This document shows, piece by piece, positions 11,277-52,139 of a stretch of DNA of 64,000 nucleotides. The DNA comes from Amoeboaphelidium protococcarum X5 (Eukaryota > Fungi > Aphelidiomycota): positions 640,189 to 704,188 of the forward strand of contig JALDTO010000206.1 of NCBI GenBank assembly GCA_023515725.1. The letters are read 5' to 3'. The stretch's first letter is position 1. Every line of letters begins with the position of its first letter. The position numbers and the translations under genes are program-made. The notes beneath the pieces were generated by a model, which saw only the letters and a list, made by a program, of their open reading frames with translations, ran no database searches and was not told the origin of the DNA.

Positions 11277-11380
11277 CACGGTTTACATTACGCTTTAGAC
11301 GCTTTGGCTGGTTTTTATTACTTCATAATCGTTGATATAAAAAAGCTCACTAAAGCTTTACTTTAGTTATAGCAATCAAA

Positions 11381-13114
11381 ATGAGTAAAGAGTCTGATAT
11401 TGTTGTATCCGAGGGTGATTTAAACTTTGATTATCCAAATGCTAGAGAGCATGCAGGATATCAAAGTGCATCTGGAAGCTCATGTGTTGGTAGTGGTATT
11501 GCTGCTGCAATGGTCCTCTGTGTTGATCTGATTTTAAGTGGTGAAAAGCATCTTTTGAGATATTCGAGCGATATTGACAGTAAGAGAATCAGTTAGATTG
11601 CTGAGCTGGTGCGCGTAAAATTGATGGATTTCGACCAACTTCCTTTAGACTCGGATGGAAATAGCACGTAGGAGCATGTGAAATAATTGCTACAATACGC
11701 GACTGATCAGGTTCAAGTAACGCCTAACAGTTATGAGTGGAAGTATAATGTGGAGATGCCACCGAGTGTTGCCGGGCATTAAAAGTAGAATGTGCAAGAC
11801 AGCTATATGATGAGTAGGATATTTTGGCCTCGTTCAAGCATCTTTAACTTTATGCTATCAAGAAGAGCCGGTGTTGAATCAGTTATCGGTCCTCTAGCAT
11901 AATGTAAGCCGGATAGTGAATTGTCCAAGAAGCTGGATTAATATACTCTGCAAGCTGGGCTGAATGGTATCGGTTTTCTGCAGCGCGTATTTCCTATGCT
12001 ACCAAGCCAGGATATCAGTAGTATATTCGGACAGGAGTGGTATGTTTATGTGCCGCTGATGTCTCATAAAAGCCTATACATCTTGCGCATAGATTTACAT
12101 GACATTTATAGCAGTGGCAAAATTATCATATTTAGGTCTGATCCTCTCTAAGGCGCGGAAATGGCTCGTTGGCTGACGGTCTGGATAACGTGGGCTATCG
12201 GAGTCTATGATCAGTTATTGAAACGTGTAAATTAGCTGAATTAACCAGTTGCCTAGTATTGCTGGATTCCGCCTCATCTCTTATCTCGTAAATTTCCACA
12301 GGTGAACCTGTTCAAGTTGGTAGCTCGTCCATCATTCTACAATCCTATATATATTGAGCTGAATGATGAGAATGATAAGGATTCTGCAGATGTTAAAGTA
12401 GATGGATACGTTTATAAATTATACAGTACATGGACTGCGAATTCAGTTTCTGTTAGAAACAAAATTTTAAATGACGGGTAGTTGTGTCAGGGGTGGGTTT
12501 TTGATGGCGCTGTTTTAAAGATGCCCTATTATCACCGTGGCGATTTGTATCAAACCCCTCCTCATGATTTTAAGAAGCTAGTGGACGTGGTACTGTAAGT
12601 TTTAAATATATTGACGCATCTTCAAGAGAAGCATCAACTTTGCCATTGCGACATTAGAGCCCCAAATATTTGCTGGTATACTGAGAACTCTGTTACGTTA
12701 ATTGATTATGATTTGGCCTCGGACATTGGCTCCGCCTCGCCAAAGGACAGAGACGCTCGTGATAATGCTCCTGAATAAGTCGTGTACGTAAATCACGATT
12801 TGTGGCTTCTTGGCGTTATGATACTTTAACTTACATCTGATTACTTTACCTGGGACTTGATTGTTTCGCATCGGAATGAATTAGTAACGCTATTTAAAAA
12901 CTGGAAGCAATAATAAAGCCAGAATCAGGATAGGGCGCCTGCTGAACCATAGTTTCATCCTTTTGATTTTACCTCTATTGAGTGGAAGGAGACATTTGTG
13001 CCGTATGTGAACCAATTGCAATTCATAATTGAGAAATGCTTGTAGTTGCACAATCGTCGCTGGTAGATGGATGAGTTAAAAACTCACCTGGAATCCTTGA
13101 AGCAGAACATCTGA
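11381..13114 (+). CDS. Crinkler-type REase-fold + protein kinase fusion, copy 1 (nuclease motif degenerate), 577 aa
   Basis: Open frame with TAR=Gln. FNFMLS...GPLAQCKP corresponds to PDFVLS...GPLVEVKK in copy 2. Kinase motifs YVYKLY, HCDIRAPNI, LIDYDLA, DLWLLG. Confidence 0.8.
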
Positions 13115-15399: not shown

Positions 15400-17103
15400 T
15401 CAAATGTTCTCCATCAACGATTCCAGGTGAGTTTTCAACTCAACCAATTACCAGCGAAAGTTGTGCAACTACAAGCATTTCTCAATTATTAATTGCAATT
15501 GGTTCACATAAGGCACAAATGTCTCCTTCCACTCAATAGAGGTAAAATCAAAAGGATGAAACTATGGTTCAGCAGGCGCCATTTCCCAATCTAAGTCATC
15601 CTGAGGTGGTACTAATACATCCCGATGCTCAGTAATAACACCCCAGGTAAAGTAATCAGATGTTAGTTAGAGTACCATTGCGCCAAGAAGCCATAAGTCG
15701 TGATTTACGTACACTTTTTCATCCGGTGCTTTATCACGAGCTTCTTTGTCCTTTGGCGAAGAGTTGCCTATTTCACAGGCCAAATCATAATCAATTAACG
15801 TGACAAGATTCTCAGAATACCAGCAAATATTTGGGGCTCTAATGTCGCAATGGCAAAGTTGATGCTTCTCTTGAAGATGCATCAATATGTTTAAAACTTA
15901 CAGTACCACATCCACTAGCTTCTTAAAGTCATGAGGAGGATTTTGATACAAATCGCCACGGTGATAATAGGGCATCTTTAGTACAGCACCATCAAAGACC
16001 CACCCCTAACACAACGAACTGTCACTTAAAATTTTGTTTTTAACAGGAACCAAATTCGCAGTCCATATACTGTATAATTTATAAACGTACCCCTTTTTCT
16101 TATCATCTCCAGAATCCTTATCATCAACCTTTTCAATGTATATAGGATTGTAAAATGATGGACGAGCCACCAACTTGGACGGGTTCACCTGTGAAAATTT
16201 ACGACTCAAGAGATGAGGAGGAATCCAACAATACTAGGCAACTGGTTAATTCAGCTAAGTAACACGTTCCAATAACTAATCATAAACTCCGATAGCCCAC
16301 GTTATCCAGACCGTCAGCCAACGGGCCATTTCTGCGCCTTAGAGACGAACAGATCTTGCGATAATGATTCTGCCACTTCTATAAATGTCGCATAAATCTA
16401 TGCGCAAAATGTAGAGGCTTTTATGAGACATCAGCGGCACATAAACATACCACTCCTCTCCGAATATACTGCTAACATCTTGGCTTGGTAGCATAGGGAA
16501 TACGCGCTACATAAAACCGATGCCATATAGACCGGCTTATCGAGTATACTTATCCAATTACTTCGACAAATCACTTTCCTTCTTAACTTCAACTAGAGGG
16601 CCAACAACCTTGTCAAATCCGATGTAAGAGAGCACAAAATCGGGCTGATTAGTATATGGACAATATATCCTACTCATCATAGGAAAATCCTCCACATCCT
16701 TCTTTTACCCGACAACATTGCGCGGCATCTCTACATTTCCTTTCCACTTATAACTGTTGGGTGTGCTTTTCACAAGTTTAGACGCACACTTAAGCAGCTC
16801 CTTCACATACTACTACGTGTGATTTATCTCATATTTCTCGGGAAGTGGGTCCATTTATGCAATTTAAGCGCGCACCTCCTCAGTATTATCATCAGCTCTC
16901 TATACATCACTATCGCTCTAATAGCTATAATATCTCGTTAAATTATTTTCAGTTCTTAATCGCATTTTTTCTATGTCAATCTAAGCTGCTGCACTGCTTT
17001 CAATACAGGAGCTTCGCGTTGCACTATGACGTACTTGATGCTCTCTGACGTTAACGTAATCCAGATTTCTGTTACGCGCTGCTACACTTTCAAATGAACT
17101 CAT
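15400..17103 (-). CDS. Crinkler-type REase-fold + protein kinase fusion, copy 2 (PD-(D/E)xK motif intact), 567 aa
   Basis: NQPDFVLSYIGFDKVVGPLVEVKKESDLSKQLDKYTRQ; kinase motifs HCDIRAPNI, LIDYDLA. Confidence 0.8.
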
Positions 17104-17394
17104 ATTGATTGATTTAATTATTGTTGTAAGAAAATAGCAGATAGATGTCACGAGAAAGAAGAAAGGATCAAACTGAATTAGGAAATGGCAACCGATGCTT
17201 TGAAACGTGATTGGCCCATCGATTGATTGGCCGGGAAGAAGGAAAGTGGATGGTTGCTTCAGCTTATTAGGACAAGAGTCGTCCAAGAATTAGCCGGAAA
17301 TAATATGTTGTTAATTAGGTTTTAAGGAATTATAGCACGGTAGCGCGAAAGATCCAGTCCTTGTAGCGAACGACTTTTGTTTCAATTTACAATA

Positions 17395-17655
17395 AGCTAG
17401 TTTAAGGCCCTGCTTAAAAGAGAACCAAATGATACAAGTACTTCAGTGCCTGCGTTCAGAATTGAGAAAAATATTTTGATAGGTGTTATTTTATATCAAT
17501 TTTATTTTATGCAAGCTTAACTTTGTCAATGCTTTTGATTCAAAATCTGTATTCTGTCATCTTTCTACCTTGCATTATTAAGATAGTTTTAGGCCAGGCC
17601 TAAATGCGAACCAAAGGATACAAGTAATTCAGTGCGCAGGCACTGAATTAGAAAA
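17395..17655. repeat. Two imperfect ~80-bp direct repeats containing hairpins (17395-17470 and 17580-17655)
   Basis: tagttt(a/t)aggcc...taaa..gaaccaaa.gatacaagta.ttcagtgc in both units; perfect 11-bp stem TAATTCAGTGC-gcag-GCACTGAATTA at 17625-17650. Confidence 0.75.
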
Positions 17656-18799: not shown

Positions 18800-20821
18800 A
18801 TAAAGAAATAGAAGATGGTTTTGATAATTAAATGCAATTTATTCATACCATTAATACAGTCGATTCATTACGAGCAATTAAAATCTAATGATCAATTGTT
18901 CTCCAGCAAAGTTTCCAGGTGAGTTTTCAACTCAACCAATTACCAGCGAAAGTTGTGCAACTACAAGCATTTCTCAATTATGAATTGCAATTGGTTCACA
19001 TAAGGCACAAATGTCTCCTTCCATCCAATAGAGGTAAAATCAAATGGATGAAACTATGGTTCAGATGGGGCCCTATCCTGATTCTGGCCTTATTATTGCT
19101 TCCAGTATTTATATTACCTTACTAATTCATCTCGATGTCTAGTAATCACGCGCCAGGTAAAGTTCTCGCAAGTAAGCTAAAGTATCATAACGCCAAGAAG
19201 CCATAAGTCGTGATTTACGTACACGAACTATTCAGGAGCATTATCACGAGCTTCTCTGTCCTTAGGCGAGGCGGAGCCTATTCTAGTAGCCAAATCATAA
19301 TCGATTAACGTAACAGAATTCTCAGAATACCAGCAAATATTTGGGGCTCTAATGTCGCAATGGCAGAGTTGGTGCTTCTCTTGAAGATGCGTCAATACAT
19401 TTACAACTTATATTACCACGTCCACTAACTTCTTAAAGTCAAGAGGAGGATTTTGATACAAATCTCCGCGGTGATAGTAAGGCATTTTCAAGACATTCTC
19501 ACTTTACACCCAGCCCTGACAAAGCGTCTTATCATTAATAATTTTAGAATTAACAAAAGTCGCATTCGCAGTCCATGTACTATATAATTTATAGACGTAT
19601 CCATTTATATCACCATCCTTATCATCATCCAGTTCAATATATATAGGATTGTAGAATGATGGACGAGCCACCAACTTAGACGGGTTCACCTGTGGGAACT
19701 CACGACATAAGAGATGAGGCGGAATCCAGCAATACTAGGCAACTGGTTAATTCAGCAAATTTACCCGTTCCAATAACTGATCATAAACTCCGATGGCCCA
19801 CGATATCCAGACCGTCAGCCAACGGGCCATTTACGCGCCTTAGAGAGGATCAGACCTAAATATGATGATTTTGCCACTGCTATAAATGTCGCATAAATCT
19901 ATGCGCAAAATGTAGAGGCTTTTATGAGACATCAGCGGCACATAAACATACCACTCCTCTCCAAATATGCTACTGACATCCTGGCTTGGTAGCATAGGAA
20001 AAACGCGCTACAGAAAGCCGATACCATTCAGCCCAGCTTGCAGAGTATACTAATCCAGCTTCTTGGACAATTCACAATCCGGCTTATATTAGGCTAGAGG
20101 ACCGACAACTGATTCAGCCCCAGCTCTTGATAGCATAAAGTTAAAGATGCTTGAACGAGGCCAATATATCCTACTCATCATATAGCTGTCTTGCACATTC
20201 TACTTTTAGTGCCCGGCATAACTCGGTGGCATCTCCACGTTATACTTCCACTCATAACTGTTAGGCGTTACTTGAACTTGATCAGTCGCGTATTGTAGCA
20301 ATTATTTCACATGCTCCCACGTGCTATTCCCATCCGAGTCTAAAGGAAGTTGGTCGAAATCCATCAATTTTACGCGCACCAGCTCAGCAATCTAACTGAT
20401 TCTCTTACTGTCAATATCGCTCGAGTATCTCAATAGATGCTTTTCACCACTTAATATCAGATCAACACAGAGGACCATTGCAGCTGCAACACCGCTACCA
20501 ACACATGAGCTTCCAGATGCACTTTGATATCCTGCATGCTCTCTAGCATTTGGATAATCAAAGCTAAAGTCACCCCCGGATACAACAATATCAGACTCTT
20601 TACTCATCTTGATTGCTATAACTATAATAAATCTTCAGCGAGCTTTTTTATATCAACGATAATGCAGTAATAAAATTCAGCCAAAGCGTCTAAAGCGTAA
20701 TGTGAACCGTGATTGGATAACACTCTGATTGGGAGCGTGATTGATATTGACTGCAATGCTTCTGTAATAGAGTGAGAAGAGTCATTTCTGCAGCGGGCAG
20801 ATGTAGATTGTCATGAATTCA
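18800..20821. repeat. Right arm of the inverted duplication (partner 11166-13203)
   Basis: See left arm. Confidence 0.9.
18892..20607 (-). CDS. Crinkler-type REase-fold + protein kinase fusion, copy 3 (nuclease motif degenerate), 571 aa
   Basis: N-terminus nearly identical to copy 1 (MSKESDIVVS...); FNFMLS...GPLAQYKP; HCDIRAPNI, LIDYDLA. Confidence 0.8.
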
Positions 20822-29478: not shown

Positions 29479-30080
29479 CTCTTGGTGGAAAACAATTAGT
29501 ATAAGTTCACGTTTTGTGGAATACTTGGATCGAAAAAGATATTACATTATTATACCAAGTTGTAACGGTAGCAGTGGTACCATCGAAAGAAACTATGAAC
29601 ACGCTTTATAATGAAAAAATATAAACAGCTTTTAAGCCGTCTTTTACTCTGCAGGGCTCATCTAACTAATTTGCTATTCTACTGGACATTAGCTGAATCT
29701 AGGTACCGTGCTGTCGCCAATACGCGGCGGTCTGGCTGAAACCTCGCTTTCTGTCATCGCCTCGACAATCCATACAGAGACACACGCGTATGAGAATACT
29801 ATATGCAAGCACTATGTGTATGGATGAATTCGCTGCATTTGAATTGCACATTTTAATCTTGCCCCGTTGTGAGCATTAAAAAATTTTAAAAAATTATGCA
29901 GCGTTAGATCGTCTTTTATAAAGTAGGCAGCATCCTCTTGGATATATCGCGTTTGTGCACGAGGTTGTAACATCCTGTTAGATCGCACACATGGTTGTGG
30001 TAGGACATTTCAGAAGCATTTTCTTTACTTTTTTGAAAGTCCGCCAAAATTAGAAAGAGTAGATATACATAGAATTTTAA

Positions 30081-31151
30081 ATGATGATAATGAGTGTTTT
30101 CTAATTGATGCTGCTAATGCTATGCGTGATTAATAGCATTTAATCTTCCTTTTAGATCCAAGAGACATGTGCAGTGTCTAAGAAAAATTTGAAAAGGACT
30201 GCTGATGGTAATGAAAGACCAAATCAGGACAACCGTCTGACCTTTCAACTATACGTTGGCGATACCTCCGTACAAGTAATGGGAATTTTCGATGGTCATG
30301 GCGACCGTGGCCACGTTATTACCGAGCTTATTAAACGCGATCTTCAGACCTGGATGAAGAAAATCTCGGATATTCCCAAAATGGCCGCTGCGATTCAGAG
30401 TGGTGACGTGGACAAAATCAAGCGCGTCATTACCAAGATTGTTCTCGCATTAGATCTTGTCTTATGCTCCAGAATGAATTACTGGTCACTTGCATACAAA
30501 AATGGATCCACCATGACTTTGGCCGTATTGATCGGGGAGGACATTTTCTTTGCGCATCTCGGAGACTCTCTATACGTGTTTGGTGAGAATTATAAGCATG
30601 GAGTAAATATTTTGAGTACAAATTTTGAATCCTTGCACTAGCCTAATCAGTTGCCAGATGAATAAGAGAGAGTTACGTCTAAAGGTGGGTATATTTAATC
30701 AGGATATATCGGATTTCCTGGAGAGAGGTCTTTGCTAGCGATGACTCGAGCTCTTGGTGACTGTGGACTAAAAACTAATAAAGATATCGGCCATTATGTG
30801 CAAATAAAACAAGCGTTATATGATCATAAGGCGCAACTGGGGTAAGATCAGACATCGCAGAATCGCGATCACGATCGCGAGCTTGTCTCTCAAGGTTATG
30901 ATAACCATGGTGTTGCCTCTGCAAAGCCCCATATAGAACATGTAAAACTGGAATCTGATAAAAGATACGCGCTATTTATGTCTACTGACGGCTTGTACGC
31001 TGACACCGAATTGAAAGATGTCATAATTGGCATGGAAAAGGAAGAGGCAAGACGCGATTCATGTAGCAAGCTGATTTAGAATTTCAGGCGTAGATCAACT
31101 GATGACACCACGGTTTTACTTTTTGATATTTAGAGAGCTGAAGGGTATTGA
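30081..31151 (+). CDS. PP2C/PPM phosphatase with predicted signal peptide, 356 aa
   Basis: MMIMSVFQLMLLMLCVINSIQS; NQD, IFDGHG, GST, HLGDS, MTRALGD, STDGL, DDTT. Confidence 0.88.
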
Positions 31152-31499
31152 ACATGAAAATAGATTTGGATGAAGTGAATGGATGATGCTTTGAATAAGA
31201 ATATAAAAGTTTAGTTTTAAAACGTTGCTGTTCCGGGCTTCTAATCACCCTGAAAAATACGCGTTGATTCTTAGAAGATTGCATCAGAGGAGGGCCTTAT
31301 GATATTGAGCTCATACCTATACATTGACCATTGCATATGAATTGGACTAGCGGTGTATAATTGATTTAAATCTACAGTTCCAATCTATTGGCTGAAACAC
31401 TGTATTCACCTTGTCAGGGGTCAATTGAAGATGAAAATTTAGCGAGATTGCAGATCAAGCCTATATTTTCCCACCCTCATCAAAATCTATAACGTGAAT

Positions 31500-32501
31500 A
31501 TGCTCACCTTGAAATCTATATCATTGGCCTCAGTCGCACTCTTTCATGTAGCACAGGCAGTTTTCTACCCATAGCAGTTGTGTCTCGAGAGCGTGGAGAA
31601 CAGACGTGGACTGCTTGGTCTGTTACCCAAGTATCGTAATCAAGACAATGCTATGTACGGTGATACGATTATAAATGGAAATCGCCTCACAATTGCTGCT
31701 ATATTTGATGGACATGGTGTTAGAGGTGATCTGATTAGCTTACAGGTGAAAAATATCCTATATCGCGAAATCAGAAAATTTCTAATGCGTGAGGATGCCG
31801 CCGCCGCTGCCCAATCTGATAATGTTGAGTATCTTCAACAGGGCATTAGTGATGCTGTACTATCTACTGATCGTGAGCTTTGTGTTTCTCGCGATGATGA
31901 CGATTATCTGGATAAAGAGTTTACTGAAAGCGGAACCACTGGCGCATTCGTAGTGGTAATTAACGAGCATATGTTCATGGGCCACATTGGTGACTCGCTG
32001 TACGTGGTGCGAGAAGAGGACCCAGTAACAGATACAATTAAAGCCTTTTCCAATTAGATAGAGTTTCACACTGTTGATATTAAGGAAGAGAAATTCAGAG
32101 TCGCGGGTAAAGGTGGCAGCATAGTGAAGAATGGCTACGTCCGCGTGCCTGGCAAAGACAAAATACTTGGAATGTCCAGAACATTGGGCGATTGTGAGTT
32201 CAAGATTGATAGGAGAAACCCAAAGATCTATGACAGCCAGGGAATCATCTCTGCCCAGCCATCGTTGAAGTATCATCGTCTGAAACGCGGCTCCAATTAC
32301 TACATACTGCTCGCCTCTGATGGACTGTTTGAGACGAGCGATGTGCGATATGTAGCTCGCCGTATGTCTTATTGTTCTGTTGATGTCAATACTTGTGACG
32401 ACCTGATTGCTGAATGGAAGCAAAATTCTAGGGATGACACGACGGTACAAATTGTCAAACTTGACGAACGTCTTTCACCCGAAGACTTTATTGTTGTTTG
32501 A
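31500..32501 (+). CDS. PP2C/PPM phosphatase with predicted signal peptide, 333 aa
   Basis: MLTLKSISLASVALFHVAQA; NQD, IFDGHG, GTT, HIGDS, MSRTLGD, ASDGL, DDTT. Confidence 0.9.
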
Positions 32502-38848: not shown

Positions 38849-39063
38849 TTTAGTAGTTTGGCTTCTATGAAAAGTTTTACGCTTCAAAGAGCAACGCGCA
38901 ATGGAACGACAGTCCATCAGTAAAGATTGACAGACGCCGTAAAGAGCATGAAGCTAACTATAAAGTGATTTAAACCAAAATTGATTTTATTTTTAATCTC
39001 GTCACATTTTAAACCTTATATCATTTCTACCTGAATACCTAATTACCATTCAATTCAATTCAA

Positions 39064-41541
39064 TCATACCATCAAGTTCTCATTCTGAACCTCATTGACA
39101 TCAGTTCTGTCCTTGAACAGTGGATTGTCGTGAGCAGAGAACTGAGCAGCGTACAATGGATTTGTTGCAGCGGAGGTAGCATCAGCTCCAAAGATGTAGT
39201 TGATGTCACGAGCAACTGCACGACTACGACGCAGCATGAACAGACCGAAAGCACTAGCAACAGCAGCAGTTGGAGCCAATACCGCCATCATGGAGATGTT
39301 GGATGGGTTGTTGGTGGAAGCTGGAGTACCGTTAGAGCCCTATGGAGCATCGGTAGCAACAACCTTAATAACAGCTGGAGTAGCTGGAGCAACTTCAAAG
39401 TTCTCTGGAGGTGCAGCAACATTTTCGTCTGGAGGCATGATGAACACTGCACCAGCGCCACTCTCAGATCCGGACTCACCAACAGGGTTGTTCAGCTCTT
39501 CCATCAAATCAGGGATGATAAAGTCCTTGAAGTCATTGGTTGGAGTTGCAGTCTCACTCTCAGTAGTAGAAGTGCTAGTTTATTCAACTGCAGTTTCAGT
39601 CTCAGTAGCAGAAGTAGTGGTTGTCTCTTCAGCGCTAGCACTGGAAGTTGTAGAAACTTCTTCGGAGGCAGTTGAGGTGCTAGAAACTTCCTCAGTGGTA
39701 GAAGTGGTAGTTGGAGCGCTAGTACTAGATTCAGAGGTAGAAGTCTCTTCAGCGACGGTAGTAGAAGAAGAGGAGCTTGTAATCTCCTCAGTAGAGCTAG
39801 AGCTAGTAGAAGTAGTAGTCTCAACTGCAGCAGTAGAAGAGCTGGTGGTGACAGGATCAACGGTGCTTGAGCTAGAGGTTACTACAACTTCAGTGGTGGA
39901 GGTAGTCTCAGGTGCAATACTGGTGCTAGTAGAAGTAGAAGTTGGCTATTCAGTACTAGAGCTGGTGCTGGTTGAGATGGAAGTGGAGGTAGACGAACTA
40001 GTCGGAGCAGCAGTGCTAGTGGAGGTGCTTGTAGAGGTGGTGGTTGGCACCACAACTACACTTGAGGACGTGCTAGTGCTAGTGGAGGTTGGAACTACAG
40101 CTACACTTGAGGATGAGCTAGTAGAAGTGCTAGTAGAGGTGCTAGTGGAGGTAGGAGTAGAGGAGGTAGAAGTGCTAGTACTACTAGAGGTTGAAGTAGT
40201 AGTCGTGCTTGTGCTAGTACTAGTAGAGGTGGAGGTGGAAGTAGAGGTGCTGGTACTACTGCTAGTTGAAGAACTTGTGGAGGTGGAGGTAGAAGTGGAG
40301 CGACTAGAGGTAGTGGTGTCAGGCACGAATACACACTTCTGCTGGACATAGCTAGTGGTGGTAACAAACTAGTCAAAGAAAGCATCGATGATAGCCTTGT
40401 TCTTAGCATCAATGAAGGTGTTAATATCAAACACTCTCATGAAGTTACCACTCTTCAGCATACGAGCCTGCAGAGAGTTACCCAAACCCAAAGCATTCAG
40501 AGCAGTCAGAGTCTTCTAGCCATCAAAGTTGGCAAAAGTTTGCTAGTTCTGGCTCTAGAAGTTAGGATGACCAAACTGGTAAGAGACAACGTTAATGTTA
40601 TCAGCATTGCTCAACTTCTTGGTCAGGAAGTAATTGCTAGTGGCAGAAGAGTAGCCACTGATAGGGTACACTTGATTAGTATCGGTAATGAACTGCTCAG
40701 TACCAGCAATCATACTGACCAAACTGTTGACGATAACACCATTATCAGCCAACATCTTTGCAGTCTCAATGATCTCATTCTCGAAACCATCAGTCAGGGT
40801 CAGAGCATTGCCCTTACGATAGTAATTCTGCAGGCCAGACAAGCTATAGTAACCAGCTTTGGTCTTACGATTACCAGAGTGATAGTAGATGTAGTCAGTT
40901 CTTTCGACAGGACCAAAGCCAGGCTCGAATTGAGCAAAAACGTTGTACAACTTGGTCAAGTAACACTTCTTAGCGCCAGAGTCGTACAGCTAGACACAGA
41001 AAGCATCATCAACACCCTGATCCTTTGCATAGTAAGAGGACACGGTAGGCAGGTCAGAGTCCTCATCGGTAGCATGCAAAAACACCTTAGTTGCACCAGC
41101 ACGCCAGTCCAGGATACAGTCAGCAGCAGACACTTTGCTTCCACAAGCCTTGTTCATGTCTCTACCCTTGTTAGTCAGAGCCATACGCATAGCCTCAAAG
41201 GAAGCCTCCTAACCACCCGAAGTACAGTCGATAGCCTCCAGAGTAGAAACCAGCTGACCATGGTTTACGGTGAGAGGCAAACGAATCTCAGGCTTACCTC
41301 CAAAGACAACCAAGGAGTATTGAGCATCAATCTTACTAGATTGAATCTTGTTAGCAAATTTCTTCATACCGTGGATGACACCCTTAATCTTGTCACACAT
41401 GGAGCCAGACGCGTCGACCAAGAAGAGGAAGTCGGCCTTCTGCATCTCGACAGTCTCAGTGACAGTCTCATCCTTGCACACGTAACCAGCACTAATAGTC
41501 TGAGCAATTAATAAAGCGGCTAAGCTCGTTAGCAATTTCAT
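39064..41541 (-). CDS. Integrin-beta/SibA-like surface receptor A: signal peptide, vWA, Ser/Thr stalk, TM, double NPxY/F tail, 825 aa
   Basis: MKLLTSLAALLIAQTISA; DFLFLVDASGSM (MIDAS); DWRAGATKVFLHATDED; S/T/E stalk; TM ISMMAVLAPTAAVASAFGLFML-RRSR; NPLYAAQFSAHDNPLF. Confidence 0.85.
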
Positions 41542-42389
41542 TATTAATGTTACGTTTGTTATTAGTTGTTGGGAAGATTGTGATAGAAGGGAGGAGGAGA
41601 AGCTGTTTGGCGAGTGGTTACGACATTGCTTTCAGCCATATGCTACGTAATCTGGTGCTGATTGGATGCGTTTGGGCTCGCAGATTGGATGCTTATTTAT
41701 TTTTAATGTATTTATATACCTCATGCTTGTTAGGAATATTCTAGAAAGATGAGAGATTGAAGTTTAAGTGAAAGGCATGTACAAAAATAGCCTATCAAGG
41801 ATGTTAGATGGATATCCTTCAAAGTGCGTGGTATTCGGACTTCTACATCGTTTTATAGAGCTTGATCGCTATAACGCTGATGCAGTCACAGCTAAGGTCC
41901 GGCCAAACTGAATCAGTGTTGCTACCTATCTTATCTTGTCCCTATTAGGAAAAATCATGGATTTGAGAGATGAGCGTTATTCAGAGGACCACGCTTTGTG
42001 AGATTTTACTATCGTTCATAGAAGAGTAACGCATTACTCTACTGATTAGCAGATATGATCTTATGCTTCTCCCTTTTCAAAAATATCAGACCTCCGCCTA
42101 CAAAACTGCTGGTTTTACAAAACACGCCCTCAATGAAAGCAATGGCCACATAAACTGGGGGTTGTGGAACTCGCTTAAGGATAATGGCGTTTCCTGGCAC
42201 TGATATGGAAATGGATCATTACGAGCTCTCATGATGAATAGTGACTCTGGCACGTATCTCTCTGTATTATCTCTTATCGATGATGCTGGAGGCTGTAATT
42301 TTGACGTTGTTGGAGAGAGTTATAGCTTGTGAGGCAGAGAGTTAAAACTTGTGAGGCAAGTGAAGTAATCTTTTACTGTACTTTTACTT

Positions 42390-42566
42390 GCAGTCTGTAA
42401 GGTGGAGATTAGCGTTTGTATAACTAAATTAGCGTTTGTATCATTAAATATCCGTGTATGTTGGCAATGTTGGCAGGCAGTCTGTAAGGTGGAGATTAGC
42501 GTTTGTATAACTAAATTAGCGTTTGTATCATTAAATATCCGTGTATGTTGGCAATGTTGGCAGGCA
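42390..42566. repeat. 87-bp tandem duplication (2 copies) with internal sub-repeats
   Basis: Units start at 42390 and 42477; each contains attagcgtttgtat twice and atgttggca twice. Confidence 0.92.
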
Positions 42567-42786
42567 ATTGCAATTGGAAGACTCTTAAACGACGCGTTCA
42601 TACCAAGCCTCCGCCTTCGTACCAATGAGAGCTATGAGACGCTTTCAAAATATCAAAAAATAGACATGGAAGTTTTACATCGCCATTATTTATTCATTAT
42701 TCATCTTTCATTCCCTATTTATCCCTATTTATTCTTCATTTCATTATTCAACATTCAACCCAATTAGAGCTCAGGCCAGAGCTTGA

Positions 42787-45735
42787 TCAAACCATGATGT
42801 TCTCATTTTGAATCTCACTATCATCGGCTCTGCTCTTGAACAGAGGGTTTTCGTGAGCGGAGAACTGAGCAGCGTACAAAGGATTCGTAGCAGCAGATGT
42901 GGAATCACCTCCAAAGATGTAGTTGATGTCACGCGCAACTGCACGACCACGACGCAGCATGAACAGACCGAAAGCAGCAGCAACAGCGGCCGTTGGAGCC
43001 AAGATGCCGATAGTAGCATTGGAAGAGCTATTATTGGAGGAGGTAGACTGATTAGCACCCTATGGAGCATCAGTAGCAACGACCTTAATAACAGCAGGTG
43101 TAGCAGGAGCAACTTCAAAGTTGACTGGAGGAGCAACAGCATCATCCGAAGCAGGCATGATAAAGACTGGCGCAGCACCTTGTTCAGATCCAGACTCACT
43201 AATAGGAGGACTGTTCATCTTCTCAAACAAGTCAGGAATAATAAAGTCACGAATAACAGCCTGAGTAGGAGATGGAGTTTCTTCCTCTTCCTCAGTCTCA
43301 GATGGGAGCTCTTCTTCAGGCTCTGAAGGAGTTTCAGTTTCCTCAACAATTTCAGTGGTAGAGGTAGGAGTCTCTTCCTAAACTTCTTCAGTAGTGGTTG
43401 TAGTTTCCTCAGCAACAGGCTCAGAAGAGGTAGAAGTCTCTTCAACAACCTCGGTACTGGTAGAAGTTTCTTCAGCAATAGGCTCAGCAGATGTAGAAGT
43501 CTCCTCCGCAACCTCAGTGGTAGACGTGGTTTCCTCAGCAGCCTCAGATGTAGTGGTGGTTTCTTCAACAGCAGCAGAGGTAGTGGTCTCTTCAACAGCA
43601 GCAGAGGTAGTAGTCTCCTCAACAACAGGCTCGGACGTAGCAATCACTTCAGACGTGGTGGTAGACTCTTCAGCAACCTCAGATGTGGAACTAGTCTCCT
43701 CAACTGCCTCAGTAGTAGTTGTAGTGATGACTTCCTCAATGGTGCTTGATGATGTTGTAGGCTCAATCACAACCTCTGAGGTAGAGGTAGTTGCCTCGAC
43801 AGAAGACTCAGTAGTGGACGTCTCAGCAGCAGGAGTAGACGAGCTAGTTACTTCCTCAGTAGTAGACGTGGTGGTCTCAGCAGGAGAAGAGCTTGTCACA
43901 GCCTCAGTAGTAAAGGTAGTACTTAGAGTGGATGACTCTGAAGTAAACACAACAGCAGCGCTAGAGGACGAGGTGGTGGTTGGCTCAACAATAACAGTAG
44001 AACTTTCAAGCAGAGCAGAGGATGAGGAAGTACTAGTAGGCTCCACAACGGAGGATGACATAATAGAAGTAGTTGTTGGTTCAACAATGATTGAGGTGCT
44101 AGTAGGCTCAATAGTAGTTGTGGAGGTGCTAGTAGAGGAGCTAGTGCTTGAGCTAGTGGAGGTGGAAGTTGGAGTGGCAGAGCTTGTGCTAGTAGTAGAC
44201 GCAGCGGTGGAGGTGGAGGAGGATGTGATAGGAGCAACAGTGGAGGTAGGACGTGAGGAGGTGGTAGTACTACGAGCAGGTGTGGTGGTAGAGGTGGTAG
44301 TTCTACGAGTAGAAGTAGTAGTGGTGGTAGTAGGTGTGGTAGTAGTAGTTGTTGTGGTGGTGGTAGTGGTAGTTGTTGTAGTTGTTGTAGTAGTAGTCGT
44401 GGTAGTAGTAGTAGTAGTCGTCGTAGTCGTAGTCGTAGTAGTGGTAGGACGAGTAGTGGTGGTAGTACGAGCAGGTGTGGTGGTAGTGGTAGTAGTTCTA
44501 CGAGTAGTGGTGTCAGGGACGAATACACACTTCTACTAAACATAGCTAGTAGTAGTAACAAACTGCTCAAAGAAGGACTCAATGATAGCAGTGTTCTTAC
44601 CATCAATGAAGGTGTTAATGTCAAACACTCTCATAAAGTTACCACTCTTCAGCATACGAGCCTGCAACGAGTTACCCAAACCCAGAGCATTCAGAGCAGT
44701 CAAAGTCTTCTGTCCATCAAAATTGGCAAAAGTCTGCTAGTTCTAACTCTGATAGTTAGGGTGACCAAACTGATAAGCAGCAACGTTAATGTTATCAGCA
44801 TTACTCAATTTCTTAGTCAGGAAGTAATTACTCGTGGCAGAGGAATAGCCGCTGATAGGGAACACCTGATTAGTATCAGCAATCAATTACTCGGTACCAG
44901 CAATCATACTGACCAGACTGTTGACGATAACACCATTATCAGACAACATCTTAGCAGTTTCAATGATCTCATTTTCGAAACCATCAGTCAAAGTCAGAGC
45001 ACTACCAGTGCGGTAATAGTTCTGCAGACCAGACATACTATAATAACCTGCCTTATTCCAAAAATTGCCAGGATAGTAGTAAATGTAGTCAGTCTGCGCA
45101 ACGGGACCAAAGCCAGGCTCGAATTGAGCAAAAATTCCATATAATCTGTCCAAATAGCATTTTTTTGCAGCAACATCATACAACTGAGTACAGAAAGCAT
45201 CATCAACACCCTAATTCTTCGCAAAGTAAGAGGACACAGTAGGCAGGTCAGAGTCCTCATCGGTAGCATGCAAAAACACCTTAGTTGCATCAGCACGCCA
45301 GTCCAGGATACAGTTAGCAGCAGTCACCTTCTTGTCACAAGCCTTGTTCATGTCTCTACCCTTGTTGGTCAGAGCCATACGCATTGCCTCAAAGGAAGCC
45401 TCCTAACCACCAGAAGTACAGTCGATAGCCTCCAGATTAGATACCAGTTAACCATGGTTAGAGGTTAAAGGTACGCGAATCTCGGGCTTACCACCAAAAA
45501 GGACCAGAGAATACTGAGCATCAATCTTGCTAGATTGAATCTTGGATGCAAACTTCTTCATACCCTTGATGACACCATCAATCTTCTCACACATGGAGCC
45601 CGACGCGTCAATCAGGAAGAGGAAGTCAGCCTTCTGCACCTGGTTGGTTTAGGTCACAGTTTCATCAGAGCACACGTAGCCGGCACTAATTGTTTGAGCT
45701 ATTAACAATGCAGCTAAGCTGGTTAGCAATTTCAT
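42787..45735 (-). CDS. Integrin-beta/SibA-like surface receptor B, 982 aa
   Basis: Same architecture; DFLFLIDASGSM; poly-Thr and EETT stalk repeats; NPLYAAQFSAHENPLF. Confidence 0.85.
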
Positions 45736-46049
45736 CTTATTAACAGTAACGTAGTTTAGATACACAGACAGACGGATGAGGAGTTGATAGTAAAAGAGAA
45801 GAGAAGAAGGCAGACTAGACTTTGGCCCAAGTGGACTATATTCGATATGCGCGCCACAATTCAGCTGATTGGACACCTTACGATGATGCGATTCGCTGGC
45901 AATGAAATTCCCAAACTGGTATTTCAGATTTCGCTTACAGTTTCATTTCCTTGGCAACGCGTAATATCAGTAAGGGCTGTACAAAACAAAAAACGAATTT
46001 GTTACCACTGTACTGTGCATATGGAGCTCTTGTGTGCAATTGTATGAGG

Positions 46050-48350
46050 TGAAACCTATTGCCTTACGACCGGAGTGCTAAGAGCAATGACGTAGTTCAA
46101 TGCTCGAAGACCGGGGTCGCTATGGCCTTAGATGATTTTACATCCTTGCTGATCGTTTTGGAAGTTTTTCCGATCTGCGTCTTTTGTAGTGATGAAACAT
46201 TAGTGAAACTAGTGGTTAACAAGTACATATTATTTGACTATACAACCCCTTTTAGCTGTTTTAACACCGACGATTTTGGCTGCCCTTTACTCATGACATA
46301 TGCTTTGGCAATTTAGGCATATTGGCTTCGAGTATCAATTGATTGCAGATTAATAGTAGACTCTAAGGCTAAAGGCAGTCATTAAAAAACAGCAGTAAAC
46401 AATCCTTGTTTGCTCTTGTGGTGCCAGTAGCTGAGCACGTCAACGACCTCTCTATCACGAACGTAACACAAGATAGAATTTCACGATATTAAAGGCGATT
46501 TAACCATATCACGAAATACAAATTTATGTTATTCGCACTTTATATAGTATCAGGTGTGGAGTCATTGGTTGTTTTACCTTTCTTCTTCTTCGTCATTAAA
46601 TATCCATACGATTTTAAAAAAATGCGTCAACAATCAATATTAGATATACTCATCCAATATTCTTGTAATAAGCGCAAACTCTCAGTCTCCTATGACGTTT
46701 CAGTTATTAGTGGTTATTAAAATGTGTCAGCCGTTGACAAGATACATCTTCCTAAAGGTAATTAGAGTTGGTCCATCGGTTTAATTTGGCTTTAGAAGAG
46801 TTTGCAAAGACAATGTTGATAACATGATCTGCTTATAAGTACTTGGATATTCTTAAAGTCGTTTCTGTCATTCTAATCAGAAGAAAGCGTAGCTGGTAGA
46901 GTTTAGCTAAATTTAGTAATACTGTCGGCGCAACTGCTATTTCATCTTAGCGTGACACACGCTGGTCTGCTCGTTGAAGCAACATTGCCAATTTTAGGAG
47001 GATGTTGGCTCGTTTTGCAACATTATGTCTCGACTCCTTGCAAGATGATATCGTGGTCTGCTTTGGTTCTTTCAACTTTATCTGTAATATCAAGTTTCTG
47101 CAACTTCTGAATTATTTGATAGCGTGTTATATAAGTGGATATTGTATACTAAATCTTACACGGCAAGACAACGGAGTCATCTAAAGCCATCACCGCAATT
47201 AAGTGTCATAGACCTTACATTAAAGACTTAATTCTTCGTATTAGCGCTTATGTTGAAGACTTAGAAAATGGTAGCGTCTGAGTAGTTTGCTGAATTGAAA
47301 TTGTTGTTAGAGTAACACTAGAATTAGTTTTTACGTGGTGAAGCCTCTGATCCTCATGCTAAAGACAATTTGATTTATATGACTGTTATATCCACTTGCC
47401 TTGAATTGTTAGAAGAACCGAGATGTTTGATTTCTGACTTAAAATCAGTAGTTGTTGATGGAGATCGCATTTTAATTGATTTTACTTCAGCTAATCTTAT
47501 AGGGCATCAAGTTAGTTGTATCAATGAATAGTTTGAATTAGATGTTACGGAGCTTAAAAGTTAGTGGAGACTTGCGCGTGGCGTTATTAAAGATAAGAGA
47601 ATAGCTAGCAAGGATTCATCCCTGGGAAGAAGTGATCAACTGGGTATAGAATTTGCTCTTAAAAAATTTGCACATGGAAAAGTTGTCTGAATGTGAGAGC
47701 TCTCTCATTATTTACTCATTCCAGTCGCGATGTTGACTATTGGCCTCAGTCTGAAAATTTGTTTGATTAGCTCCTAGCTAATTGCTCTATTCTGCCCTAT
47801 TCTCAAATCCGAGCCATCTGCTTAATTATTCCATTTAAAGCATTGCTCCATATTTGTAATGTTCTTCACTGTATTATAACAATGCCTTAGTCCTAATACT
47901 ATGCAAGCTGTTAAACTCGTAAATCTAATCTTGATATCGACTAGCTGCTTAGGGAAAATTGATCATATATTGCGATTATCTGTGCGTTATAAACGATCTG
48001 GCTTCACTAAAGAACAATTGAAGTAAAATTTCCGATATTAGAATCAAGATAAGGAGTATATTTACATATCGAGATGATGACATTAAATTTGAGCTGTCGC
48101 ACTCTGGAAATAGAACTACGCTGGCTTCAGTTTGATTCTCTTCCCGTCTACAATCAAGCGTTAGTTCCTGCGCTAACTTTGGCTATCTAGTAATTGCAGC
48201 AGTGAATGGTCTTTTTCCATTTTAGCCAATGTGAAGTGTGCATAGAAAAATAAGTATGGCCGTCAACGTAATAGTTATCTGATGTAACTGGTGTATTATG
48301 CTGATGCTGTGAATAAGATTAATTTATATGAATTGAGTTATTTGTCACTG
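46050..48350 (+). mobile_element. Heavily decayed hAT-like transposase remnant
   Basis: Frameshifted fragments ALVVPVAEHVNDLSI (~46410-46460, resembling the hAT CxxH region) and LPVYNQALVPALTLAI/SNCSSEWSFSILANVK...KNKYGRQR (~48140-48270, resembling the hAT dimerisation motif). No convincing TIRs. Confidence 0.5.
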
Positions 48351-49220
48351 TAAACGAGAAGAGTGGATTCAATGTGACAGACAAATCTGTATGGAAATGA
48401 GTAAATTTTGGTAAATCCCTACTACTGTATCTAAGCAAAGTCATCCTTCTTTTACTGCCCAGATTATTTGACCCGGACCAGATACGAGGCAGGTACTTAA
48501 ACGCTCCATCCCTGCTCTTCACGCTTACATTAGATGAGGTTATCAAAACCAAAAATTAAAAGTGTTCTGCTTTAAGTGCGGTATCAATTAGTTATTCACA
48601 ATTCCGTATGTCCATACACAAATGGCGTTTCTGAACGTGGTAATCGTTTAGGAAGTATTATGAGCGCGTTTCACAGCCAGCGGGCTTAAGCTCTCTAGTA
48701 TGCTGTCGTCACCAAGAATTCGTACTCGACCAGCTCAGCTTTTAATTCGTTCTTTCACAAATGTCTATCGTCTCTGTTATGTCTCCCTGCGTCATATTAT
48801 CATTCCGACATCCTAGAAAGATGTCGATCGAATGGTCTTGCACTAATAGCACATTGTTCTCCGCGCAGTACTGCATCTGCAGACAAAAGTAAGTTCAATT
48901 GATTCAACACAAACTTTATCATGCAAATATCGCATTTCATTACGCGATAACCCGTCGTCACGTACCAGAGGAAAAATACTAATTCTGGGCAGGCCCTCAC
49001 ACGTTTGATGACGAGAGCGCTAGCGCACTCGACAACCATCGTAAGCGAGCCTAAGTTCTAAATGGTAAGAGGTAAGATGGTAGAAACAATTAGCAAAGTA
49101 AAATGTACTCAGCCTAAATGTCCGTTTCATTCATTCATTCATTACTCATCTTTCATTCCATATTATTCTTCAATTCATTATTCAACATTCATCCCAATTG
49201 AAGCTCAGGCCAGAGCTTGA

Positions 49221-52139
49221 TCAAACCATGATGTTCTCATTTTGAATCTCACTGTCATCAGCTCTGCTCTTGAACAGAGGGTTTTCGTGAGAAGAGAACT
49301 GAGCAGCATACAATGGGTTCGTAGCAGCAGATGTGGAATCACCTCCAAAGATGTAGTTGATGTCACGAGCAACTGCACGACCACGACGCAGCATGAACAG
49401 ACCGAAAGCAGCAGCAGCAGCAGCTGTTGGAGCCAAGATTCCGATAGTAGCGTTGGAAGAGCTATTATTAGAGGAAGTAGACTGATTGGCACCCTATGGA
49501 GCATCAGTAGCAACGACCTTAATAACAGCTGGTGTAGCAGGAGCAACTTCAAAGTTCACTGGAGGAGCAACAACATCATCAGAAGAAGGCATAATAAAGA
49601 CTGGCGCAGCACCTTGTTCAGATCCAGACTCACTAATAGGAGGGCTGTTCAGTTTCTCAAACAAGCCAGGGATGATAAAGTCACGAATAACCGCCTGAGT
49701 AGGAGATGGAGTTTCTTCCTCTTCCTCAGTCTCAGATGGGAGCTCTTCTTCAGGCTCTGAAGGAGTTTCAGTTTCCTCAACAATTTCAGTAGTAGATGTA
49801 GAAGTCTCTTCCTAAACTTCTTCAGTGGTGGTTGTAGTTTCCTCAGCAACAGGCTCAGAAGAGGTAGAAGTCTCTTCAACAACCTCGGTACTGGTAGAAG
49901 TTTCTTCAGCAACAGGCTCAGCAGATGTAGAAGTCTCCTCCGCAACCTCAGTGGTAGAAGTGGTTTCTTCAGCAGCAGCAGATGTAGTAGTCTCCTCAGC
50001 AACAGACTCAGAAGAGGTAGTAGTTTCCTCAACAACAGGCTCAGAGGTGGCAATCGCTTCAGACGTGGTAGTAGACTCTTCAACAACCTCGGATGTGGAA
50101 CTAGTCTCCTCAACTGCCTCAGTAGTAGTTGTGGTGATGACTTCTTCAATGGTGCTTGATGACGTTGTAGGCTCAATCACGACCTCTGAGGTAGAGGTAG
50201 TTGCCTCAACAGAAGACTCGGTAGTTGACGTCTCAGCAGCAGGAGTAGAGGAGCTAGTTACTTCCTCAGTACTAAACGTGGTAGTCTCAGCAGGAGTAGA
50301 GCTTGTCACAGCTTCAGTAGTAGAGGTAGTACTTTCCGTGGTTGACTCTGAAGTAGACGTAACAGCAGCGCTAGAGGAAGAGGTGGTGGTTGGCTCGACA
50401 ATTACAACAGAGGAAGTAGAAGTTTCAACTACAGCAGAGAATGAGCTAGTACTAGTAGGTTCCACAATGGAGGATGACATAATAGAAGTAGTTGTTGGTT
50501 CAACAATGATTGAGGTGGTTGTTGGCTCAACAGTAGCAATAGAGGAGCTAGTGGTTGAGCTAGTGCTAGTGGAGGTGGAAGTTGGAGCGGCAGAGCTTGT
50601 GCTAGTAGTAGACGCAGCGGTGGAGGTGGAGGAGGATGTGATAGGAGCAACGGTGGAGGTAGGACGAGTAGTGGTAGTACTACGAGCAGGTGTGGTAGTG
50701 GTGGTAGTAGTTCTACGAGTAGAAGTAGTAGTCGTGGTAGTAGGAGTGGTAGTGGTAGTAGTAGTGGTGGTGGTAGTGGTGGTGGTAGTTGTAGTAGTCG
50801 TGGTAGTTGTAGTAGTAGTAGTAGTAGTGGTAGTAGTAGTAGTAGTGGTAGGACGAGTAGTGGTGGTAGTACGAGCAGGTGTGGTGGTAGTGGTGGTAGT
50901 TTTACGAGTAGTAGTATCAGGGACGAATACACACTTCTACTAAACATAGCTAGTAGTAGTCACAAACTGCTCAAAGAAGGACTCAATGATCGCAGTGTTC
51001 TTTCCGCCAATGAAGGTGTTAATGTCAAACACTCTCATAAAGTTACCACTCTTCAGCATACGAGCCTGCAAAGAGTTACCCAGTCCCAAAGCATTCAGAG
51101 CAGTCAAAGTCTTCTGGCCATCAAAGTTGGCAAAAGTCTGCTAGTTCTAACTCTGATAGTTAGGGTGGCCAAACTGATAAGCAGCAACATTAATGTTATC
51201 AGCATTATTCAATTTTTAAGTCAAGAAGTAATTGCTCGTGGCAGAGGAATAGCCGCTGATAGGGAACACCTGATTAGTATCAGCAATCAATTACTCGGTA
51301 CCAGCAATCATACTGACCAGACTGTTGACGATAACACCATTATCAGACAACATCTTAGCAGTCTCAATGATCTCATTCTCGAAACCATCAGTCAAAGTCA
51401 GAGCACTACCAGTGCGGTAATAGTTCTGCAGACCAGACAAACTGTAGTAACCTGCCTTGTTCCTTCTATCACCAGGATAGTAATAAATGTAGTCAGTCTT
51501 AGCAACAGGACCAAAGCCAGGTTCAAATTGAGCAAAAATGTCATACAGACTGGTCAGATAGCATTTTTTAGCAGCAACATCGTACATCTGAGTACAGAAA
51601 GCATCTTCAACACCCTAATTCTTCGCGAAGTAAGAGGAAACGGTAGGCAGGTCAGAGTCTTCATCAGTAGCATGCAAAAACACCTTAGTTGCATCAGCAC
51701 GCCAGTCCAGGATACAGTCAGCAGCAGACACCTTCTTGTCACAAGCCTTGTTCATGTCTCTACCCTTGTTAGTCAGAGCCATACGCATAGCCTCAAAAGA
51801 AGCCTCCTAACCACCAGAAGTACAGTCGATAGCCTCCAGATTAGATACCAGTTAACCATGGTTAGAGGTTAAAGGTACGCGAATCTCGGGCTTACCACCA
51901 AAAAGGACCAGAGAATACTGAGCATCAATCTTGCTAGATTGAATCTTGGATGCAAACTTCTTCATACCCTTGATGACACCATCAATCTTCTCACACATGG
52001 AGCCGGACGCGTCAATCAGGAAGAGGAAGTCAGCCTTCTGCACCTGGTTGGTTTAGGTCACAGTTTCATCGGAGCACACGTAGCCGGCACTAATTGTTTG
52101 AGCTATTAACAATGCAGCTAAGCTGGTTAGCAATTTCAT
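49221..52139 (-). CDS. Integrin-beta/SibA-like surface receptor C (recent duplicate of B), 972 aa
   Basis: Same architecture; NPLYAAQFSSHENPLF; flanks match those of B. Confidence 0.85.

Follow-up and report, generated by a model that had tools for sequence, protein, structure and literature searches.

Putative adhesion receptors of aphelids and zoosporic fungi that pair a vWA head shared with bacteria and an integrin-type double NPxY tail

In TRAP of Apicomplexa and in ANTXR1/2, a vWA head is carried on a stalk above one membrane helix and a short, actin-linked tail. SibA of Dictyostelium works without an alpha chain and, bound to talin by its proximal NPxY motif, carries force (PMC9197732, PMC12686525). 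Reviews treat the Sib proteins as amoebozoan-specific, and SibA-E have been reported from dictyostelids only; criteria for membership of the integrin beta family were set out by Kang et al. (10.1101/2020.04.29.069435). Talin is reported in chytrid groups, and the available part of Prostak et al. proposes that chytrid talin serves in crawling and names no receptor (10.1101/2020.06.12.142943), while the membrane receptor for the talin scaffold of basal fungi has been called unidentified (PMC5042518). Described here are three tandem genes, A, B and C, from a 64,000-nucleotide stretch (the window) of Amoeboaphelidium protococcarum, an aphelid that is related to fungi and parasitizes algae. Together with the family to which they belong, they probably encode talin-coupled adhesion receptors.

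Genes A (39064..41541, 825 aa), B (42787..45735, 982 aa) and C (49221..52139, 972 aa) all lie on the minus strand. In the window, which has a GC content of 41%, the long frames are opened only by genetic code table 6, in which TAA and TAG encode Gln; a table 11 reading places 9-12 TAA/TAG interruptions in each of them. An earlier note on this DNA had proposed three such frames from the letters alone, and each frame, with every element named for it, was recovered in place. Its suggestion that the odd code hides genes of this kind holds for aphelids only, given that chytrid homologues are written in the standard code and that a paralogue, D, is annotated (as hypothetical). TAR and CAR codons are exchanged among paralogues at conserved Gln columns, where standard-code chytrids also have Gln. 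The ratio of nonsynonymous to synonymous substitution rates (dN/dS) in the head is 0.05-0.11, and all three genes appear to be under purifying selection. Genes B and C share 175 upstream bases and 96% identity in the head, and C is evidently a recent duplicate of B. Contigs from a freshwater metatranscriptome, given without strand or level, run without joints across 39029-41568 and across B in its 3' part, with a gap at 41683-42781 that has a similar counterpart in a run of unknown type. The lack of joints suggests transcription free of introns, and all three genes, intact and intronless, appear to be transcribed. A frameshift or pseudogene reading of the genes was rejected on the jointless RNA contigs, the TAR/CAR exchanges and the dN/dS. 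Between genes A and B, at 42390-42563, two identical 87-base copies stand in tandem.

All three proteins have the architecture that had been read from the translations: a signal peptide followed by a vWA head, then a Ser/Thr/Glu stalk, a single helix and the tail NPLY-x8-NPLF. The signal peptide and membrane helix were assigned by hydropathy and conservation. In A (all positions on the minus strand), the predicted signal peptide covers residues ~1-18 (41488..41541), a position matched in homologues. The vWA head (40318..41487, ~390 aa) has a beta-I-like Rossmann core with inserts, flanked by Cys22 and Cys403. It includes the DxSxS motif of a MIDAS (an adhesion site that depends on a metal ion; 41401..41415) and the QEA..EA.R and W...ATDEDSD segments (41053..41211), which hold an invariant Glu112 and a near-invariant Asp159; the DASGS, QEASFEAM and W..ATKVFLHATD segments pointed out earlier are all present in the translations. 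Searches of the window proteins used stop-free pieces, the first of which matches Pfam VWA_2 (E 6.8e-9), and the annotated paralogue P0001 was substituted for the whole head. The mucin-like stalk (39529..40317) is Ser/Thr-rich and then Glu-rich and has no cysteine; the eight Cys all lie inside the head. An Ala-rich membrane helix with basic stop-transfer residues follows (39220..39291); in the three proteins the hydrophobicity of the helix is moderate (Kyte-Doolittle mean 1.9-2.1), and it contains one Pro. The tail motifs of A (39115..39162; NPLY at 39151-39162, NPLF at 39115-39126) lie 23 residues past the first basic residue. The corresponding head, helix and tail motifs are at 44512-45681, 42955-43011 and 42838-42885 in B and at 50916-52085, 49389-49445 and 49272-49319 in C.

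An AlphaFold2 model of the head from a 47-row alignment (predicted local distance difference test, pLDDT, 87.8; predicted template modelling score 0.91) shows a Rossmann core into which a beta-hairpin is inserted; P0033, folded from one sequence, reached pLDDT 39. Integrin beta-I domains rank first against the model in Foldseek and in both VIA-align runs, with Z 16-17.4 over ~190 residues and a root-mean-square deviation of 2.5-3.9, which fits the beta-I likeness that had been suggested from motifs. Other vWA domains reach Z 16.2, and because this margin is small the match speaks for fold class rather than ancestry. D43, S45, S47, E112 and D159 are invariant or near-invariant in homologues, and Glu112 and Asp159 of A are likely the remaining MIDAS ligands; D159 aligns, weakly, with the VSDADS segment of beta-6. 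The Asp pair of the ADMIDAS (the site adjacent to the MIDAS) was not found after DxSxS in the family alignment, where positions 49-51 are mostly Cys, variable and Tyr/Lys. Gly-Gly-Gln precedes E112, in the region of the synergistic metal-binding site, and the conserved acids E160, D161 and D163 could form another metal site.

Over its six frames the window contains three double NPx[YF] motifs, where shuffled sequence gives 0.04. These motifs are also conserved in distant homologues, being kept in 18 of the 21 that have a C-terminal membrane helix, with 7-10 residues between the motifs and 21-29 residues to the membrane. Across 20 aligned homologues both NP pairs are invariant, and the remaining tail residues have diverged. 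A profile of the tails compared with the PDB finds integrin beta-7 first, weakly (E 0.029), with beta-3 and beta-1 close behind, and Pfam PF08725 is approached only below its cut-off (E 0.03-0.1). The alpha-contact motif LLxxxHDRKE was not found in any aligned tail. A further NPLY-x8-NPLY pair, missed by the head profile, is encoded on two other contigs of the genome (C214:68607-68654 and C264:1884135-1884182, both minus strand), where this tail may be joined to another ectodomain.

The proteins resemble SibA-E in being type I proteins with a vWA domain, a small-residue helix and two NPxY motifs, in occurring as tandem paralogues and in the pairing of talin with the apparent lack of an alpha chain. 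They differ in that they are much shorter (500-1000 aa) and have a Ser/Thr stalk in place of Cys-rich modules; the long ectodomain with a Cys-rich region typical of SibA-E is not seen in the family. Pfam vWA_SIBA-E (PF24909) weakly matches six of 47 family rows (best E 8.7e-5) and matches neither the window proteins nor P0001. With integrin beta, they share a beta-I-like fold, Glu/Asp MIDAS segments and NPxY-x8-NPxY/F motifs placed about as far from the membrane, but they lack the PSI, hybrid, EGF and beta-tail domains, the ADMIDAS pair and the HDRKE motif, have large inserts in the head and come from a genome with no clear alpha chain. PF00362 matches eight of the 47 rows weakly (best E 3.7e-5). 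TRAP and ANTXR1/2 give lower structural scores (Z ~13) and have different tails. On these comparisons, the family belongs to neither integrin beta nor Sib, failing defining features of both, and direct descent from integrin beta was judged unlikely. By analogy, the family probably functions like SibA.

The genome (23.6 Mb) holds the majority of its genes twice, and a head profile search of it found ten full family genes. Counterparts of A, B and C lie on one contig (C233), and paralogue D (604 aa, head identity 55%, NPLY-x8-NPLY) has two copies on another (C155). Paralogue E (541 aa, NPLY-x7-NELY), on contigs C200 and C158 (L049:1270-2985, plus strand, and L050:1066-2745, minus strand), has a decayed MIDAS and almost no stalk, and it is possible that it is a ligand-free or regulatory member. 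GxxxG is present in the helix of E and in many homologues and is missing from the Ala-rich helices of A-D. Among the paralogues the stalk varies from ~0 to >500 residues, with head and tail constant. The paralogue search also returned KAI3637808.1 from A. protococcarum.

An HMMER scan of representatives with a 171-residue head piece gave 56 of them at E up to 1e-3. Word-indexed searches yielded P0001 and P0009 only, and since the HMMER scan recovered the family, their blanks reflect a limit of sensitivity. Homologues are found in the aphelids A. occidentale and Paraphelidium tribonemae, in Rhizophlyctis, two Synchytrium species, Polychytrium, Irineochytrium, Phlyctochytrium, Nowakowskiella and Caulochytrium, and in the rumen fungi (Neocallimastigomycota) Pecoramyces and Neocallimastix. 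Among the named members, about half, of 30 homologues checked there was no Dikarya, animal or amoeba, although a single fragment query cannot show absence. P0052 and P0055 were discarded as spurious repeat matches. The head is fused to the adhesive domain pAdhesive_15 in rumen fungi and Polychytrium. Proteins of the rumen-fungus type (P0002, P0004, P0005, P0014 and P0016) are giants with 2-5 tandem heads plus pAdhesive_15 domains that end in a helix with double NPLY or in Cys-rich repeats, and these are candidate fibre adhesins. In quick, unrooted trees without integrin or Sib sequences, the rumen fungi, most of the chytrids and the aphelids (E, a long branch, excepted) fall into groups of their own, a pattern that fits vertical descent; the receptor looks to date back to the ancestor that aphelids and fungi share. 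No published description of the family was found in the searchable literature, the coverage of which does not extend to the 2022 aphelid genome paper.

The nearest sequence kin of the head are rare bacterial surface vWA proteins rather than integrin beta or Sib. A prokaryotic motif scan found a PEP-CTERM protein in a Vicinamibacterales genome (L058) and a Planctomycetota protein (L059), and vWA domains of this type align with the family head over the full core (hhalign probability 100, E 5.9e-42, identity 34%). On the family head profile, bit scores are 91-191 for six bacterial proteins and ~25 for integrin beta-6, and the five included in the tree cluster together with 99 in the Shimodaira-Hasegawa-like approximate likelihood ratio test. 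Such proteins are rare, occurring in 1 and 3 of 401 genomes of the two phyla that were sampled, and further bacterial-type members (L102, L103) come from a metagenome. They are compact, without the eukaryotic inserts, and have PEP-CTERM or other C-termini and no NPxY tail. L058, L059, L062, L063, L102 and L103 carry the signature ATDEDSDLP, some are PEP-CTERM anchored, and their Pfam VWA matches are weak. On this sequence evidence a transfer, in one direction or the other, is likely between bacteria and the line of aphelids and fungi, and the receptor looks to have been separately assembled from a vWA subfamily common with bacteria and an NPxY tail. The earlier note had missed both this closeness to bacteria and the range of the family in aphelids and zoosporic fungi.

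Talin and vinculin, for which a search had been proposed, are both encoded in the genome. Talin is full length and present in two copies, and comprises F0, FERM and rod parts and an actin-binding region at the C-terminus. The match of its F2-F3 to talin-1/2 has E 1e-29 to 1e-31; its FERM F3 site is intact and retains the RWA segment, which contacts NPxY. Vinculin was found at E 1e-60. Kindlin coupling, raised in the earlier note, is not supported, as Kindlin_2_N had no match in the genome. This is a weak negative, given that the controls were prokaryotic and that the code and introns lower sensitivity, and the same holds for PF00362 (integrin beta) and PF01839 (integrin alpha), also unmatched there. 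Talin is reported in the groups that carry the family (10.1101/2020.06.12.142943; PMC5042518), and the range of the family (aphelids, chytrids and Neocallimastigomycota) overlaps the talin-bearing groups. In the proposed mechanism, a metal-dependent vWA head would grip a ligand outside the cell (substrate, algal wall or prey), and a presumably O-glycosylated stalk of variable length would hold the head off the membrane and set its reach. The membrane-proximal NPLY would recruit talin via FERM F3, talin and vinculin would couple the receptor to actin as an outside-in clutch, and the second NPxY/F may engage a further protein of FERM or PTB type. Conformational activation in the manner of integrins is unlikely because a hybrid domain and alpha-contact motif are missing, and it is more probable that clustering and the level at the surface exert control.

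Several points weigh against coupling to talin. NPxY motifs are also used in endocytosis and recycling. The genome encodes other FERM proteins: a myosin with two FERM domains, one of KRIT1/FRMD8 type and one more pair. The overlap of family and talin was judged at the level of groups, and Pecoramyces P0002 and Neocallimastix P0005 have no helix or tail. The earlier note placed the receptors tentatively in amoeboid zoospores; in C1A, it is sporangia and germinating spores rather than zoospores in which the scaffold genes are highest (PMC5042518).

The strongest alternative, though an unlikely one, is an uptake or recycling receptor, in which the head captures ligand and the NPxY motifs act as sorting signals for endocytic or endosomal adaptors rather than for talin. 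NPxY/F is a known sorting signal, aphelids phagocytose host contents and the KRIT1/FRMD8-type protein is present, but PID (PF00640) and SNX17_FERM_C were unmatched in the genome (weak negatives as above, with silent prokaryotic controls), and the motif spacing and membrane distance are conserved and integrin-like. Somewhat less probable is that the receptors are cargo which a MyTH4-FERM myosin takes to filopodial tips for sensing contact, with talin secondary; the two-FERM myosin is present and Dictyostelium myosin VII works with talin A on Sib tails, and this proposal is compatible with coupling to talin. It is very improbable that the proteins are reduced true integrin beta chains that form a heterodimer with a propeller membrane protein. 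Beta-I is the best structural match, and contig C197 encodes an FG-GAP-like propeller with a short stalk and one helix (L034:3593-5707, minus strand; FG-GAP_2 E 0.022), tail to tail with the KRIT1/FRMD8-type gene (L034:1948-3498). That protein lacks GFFKR, however, and, besides the missing PSI, hybrid and EGF domains, LLxxxHDRKE and genomic PF00362 match, there is no Cys beyond residue 403 and the bacterial proteins far outscore integrin beta-6 on the head profile. Equally hard to credit is that the proteins serve mainly in attaching cysts, as a glue or coat mucin that is shed or bound to the wall, with a tail for trafficking only: the mucin stalks are long and change fast from copy to copy, and tail-less homologues exist, but the tail motifs are invariant in aphelids, chytrids and rumen fungi, and even in MIDAS-decayed paralogue E. 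A GPI (glycosylphosphatidylinositol)-anchored mucin adhesin was rejected, because 55 polar residues come after the helix, which is thus not at the extreme C-terminus and is no GPI signal.

Elsewhere in the window are three related open reading frames (11336-13114, plus strand; 15400-17442 and 18892-20634, minus strand), two of them near-identical and inverted, and a tandem pair of PP2C-like phosphatase genes (29697-32501, plus strand) with hydrophobic N-termini resembling signal peptides.

Basal fungi have retained talin, vinculin and paxillin and have no integrin, and the family described here would fill a gap stated in the literature. With their conserved integrin-style tail, its members are strong candidates to be the anchor that fungal talin had seemed to be without. 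The fuller proposal, that an undescribed aphelid and zoosporic-fungal family, independent of integrins and Sib, in which a vWA head of a kind shared with bacteria is joined to a tail of integrin type, is that missing anchor, is plausible but still tentative. If true, talin-based adhesion would have been solved in a third way, one kept from the ancestor of fungi. Named genes are now available to test in chytrids and aphelids, and they are likely a handle on the attachment of aphelids to algae and a case for the rebuilding of talin-binding receptors through ectodomain swaps.

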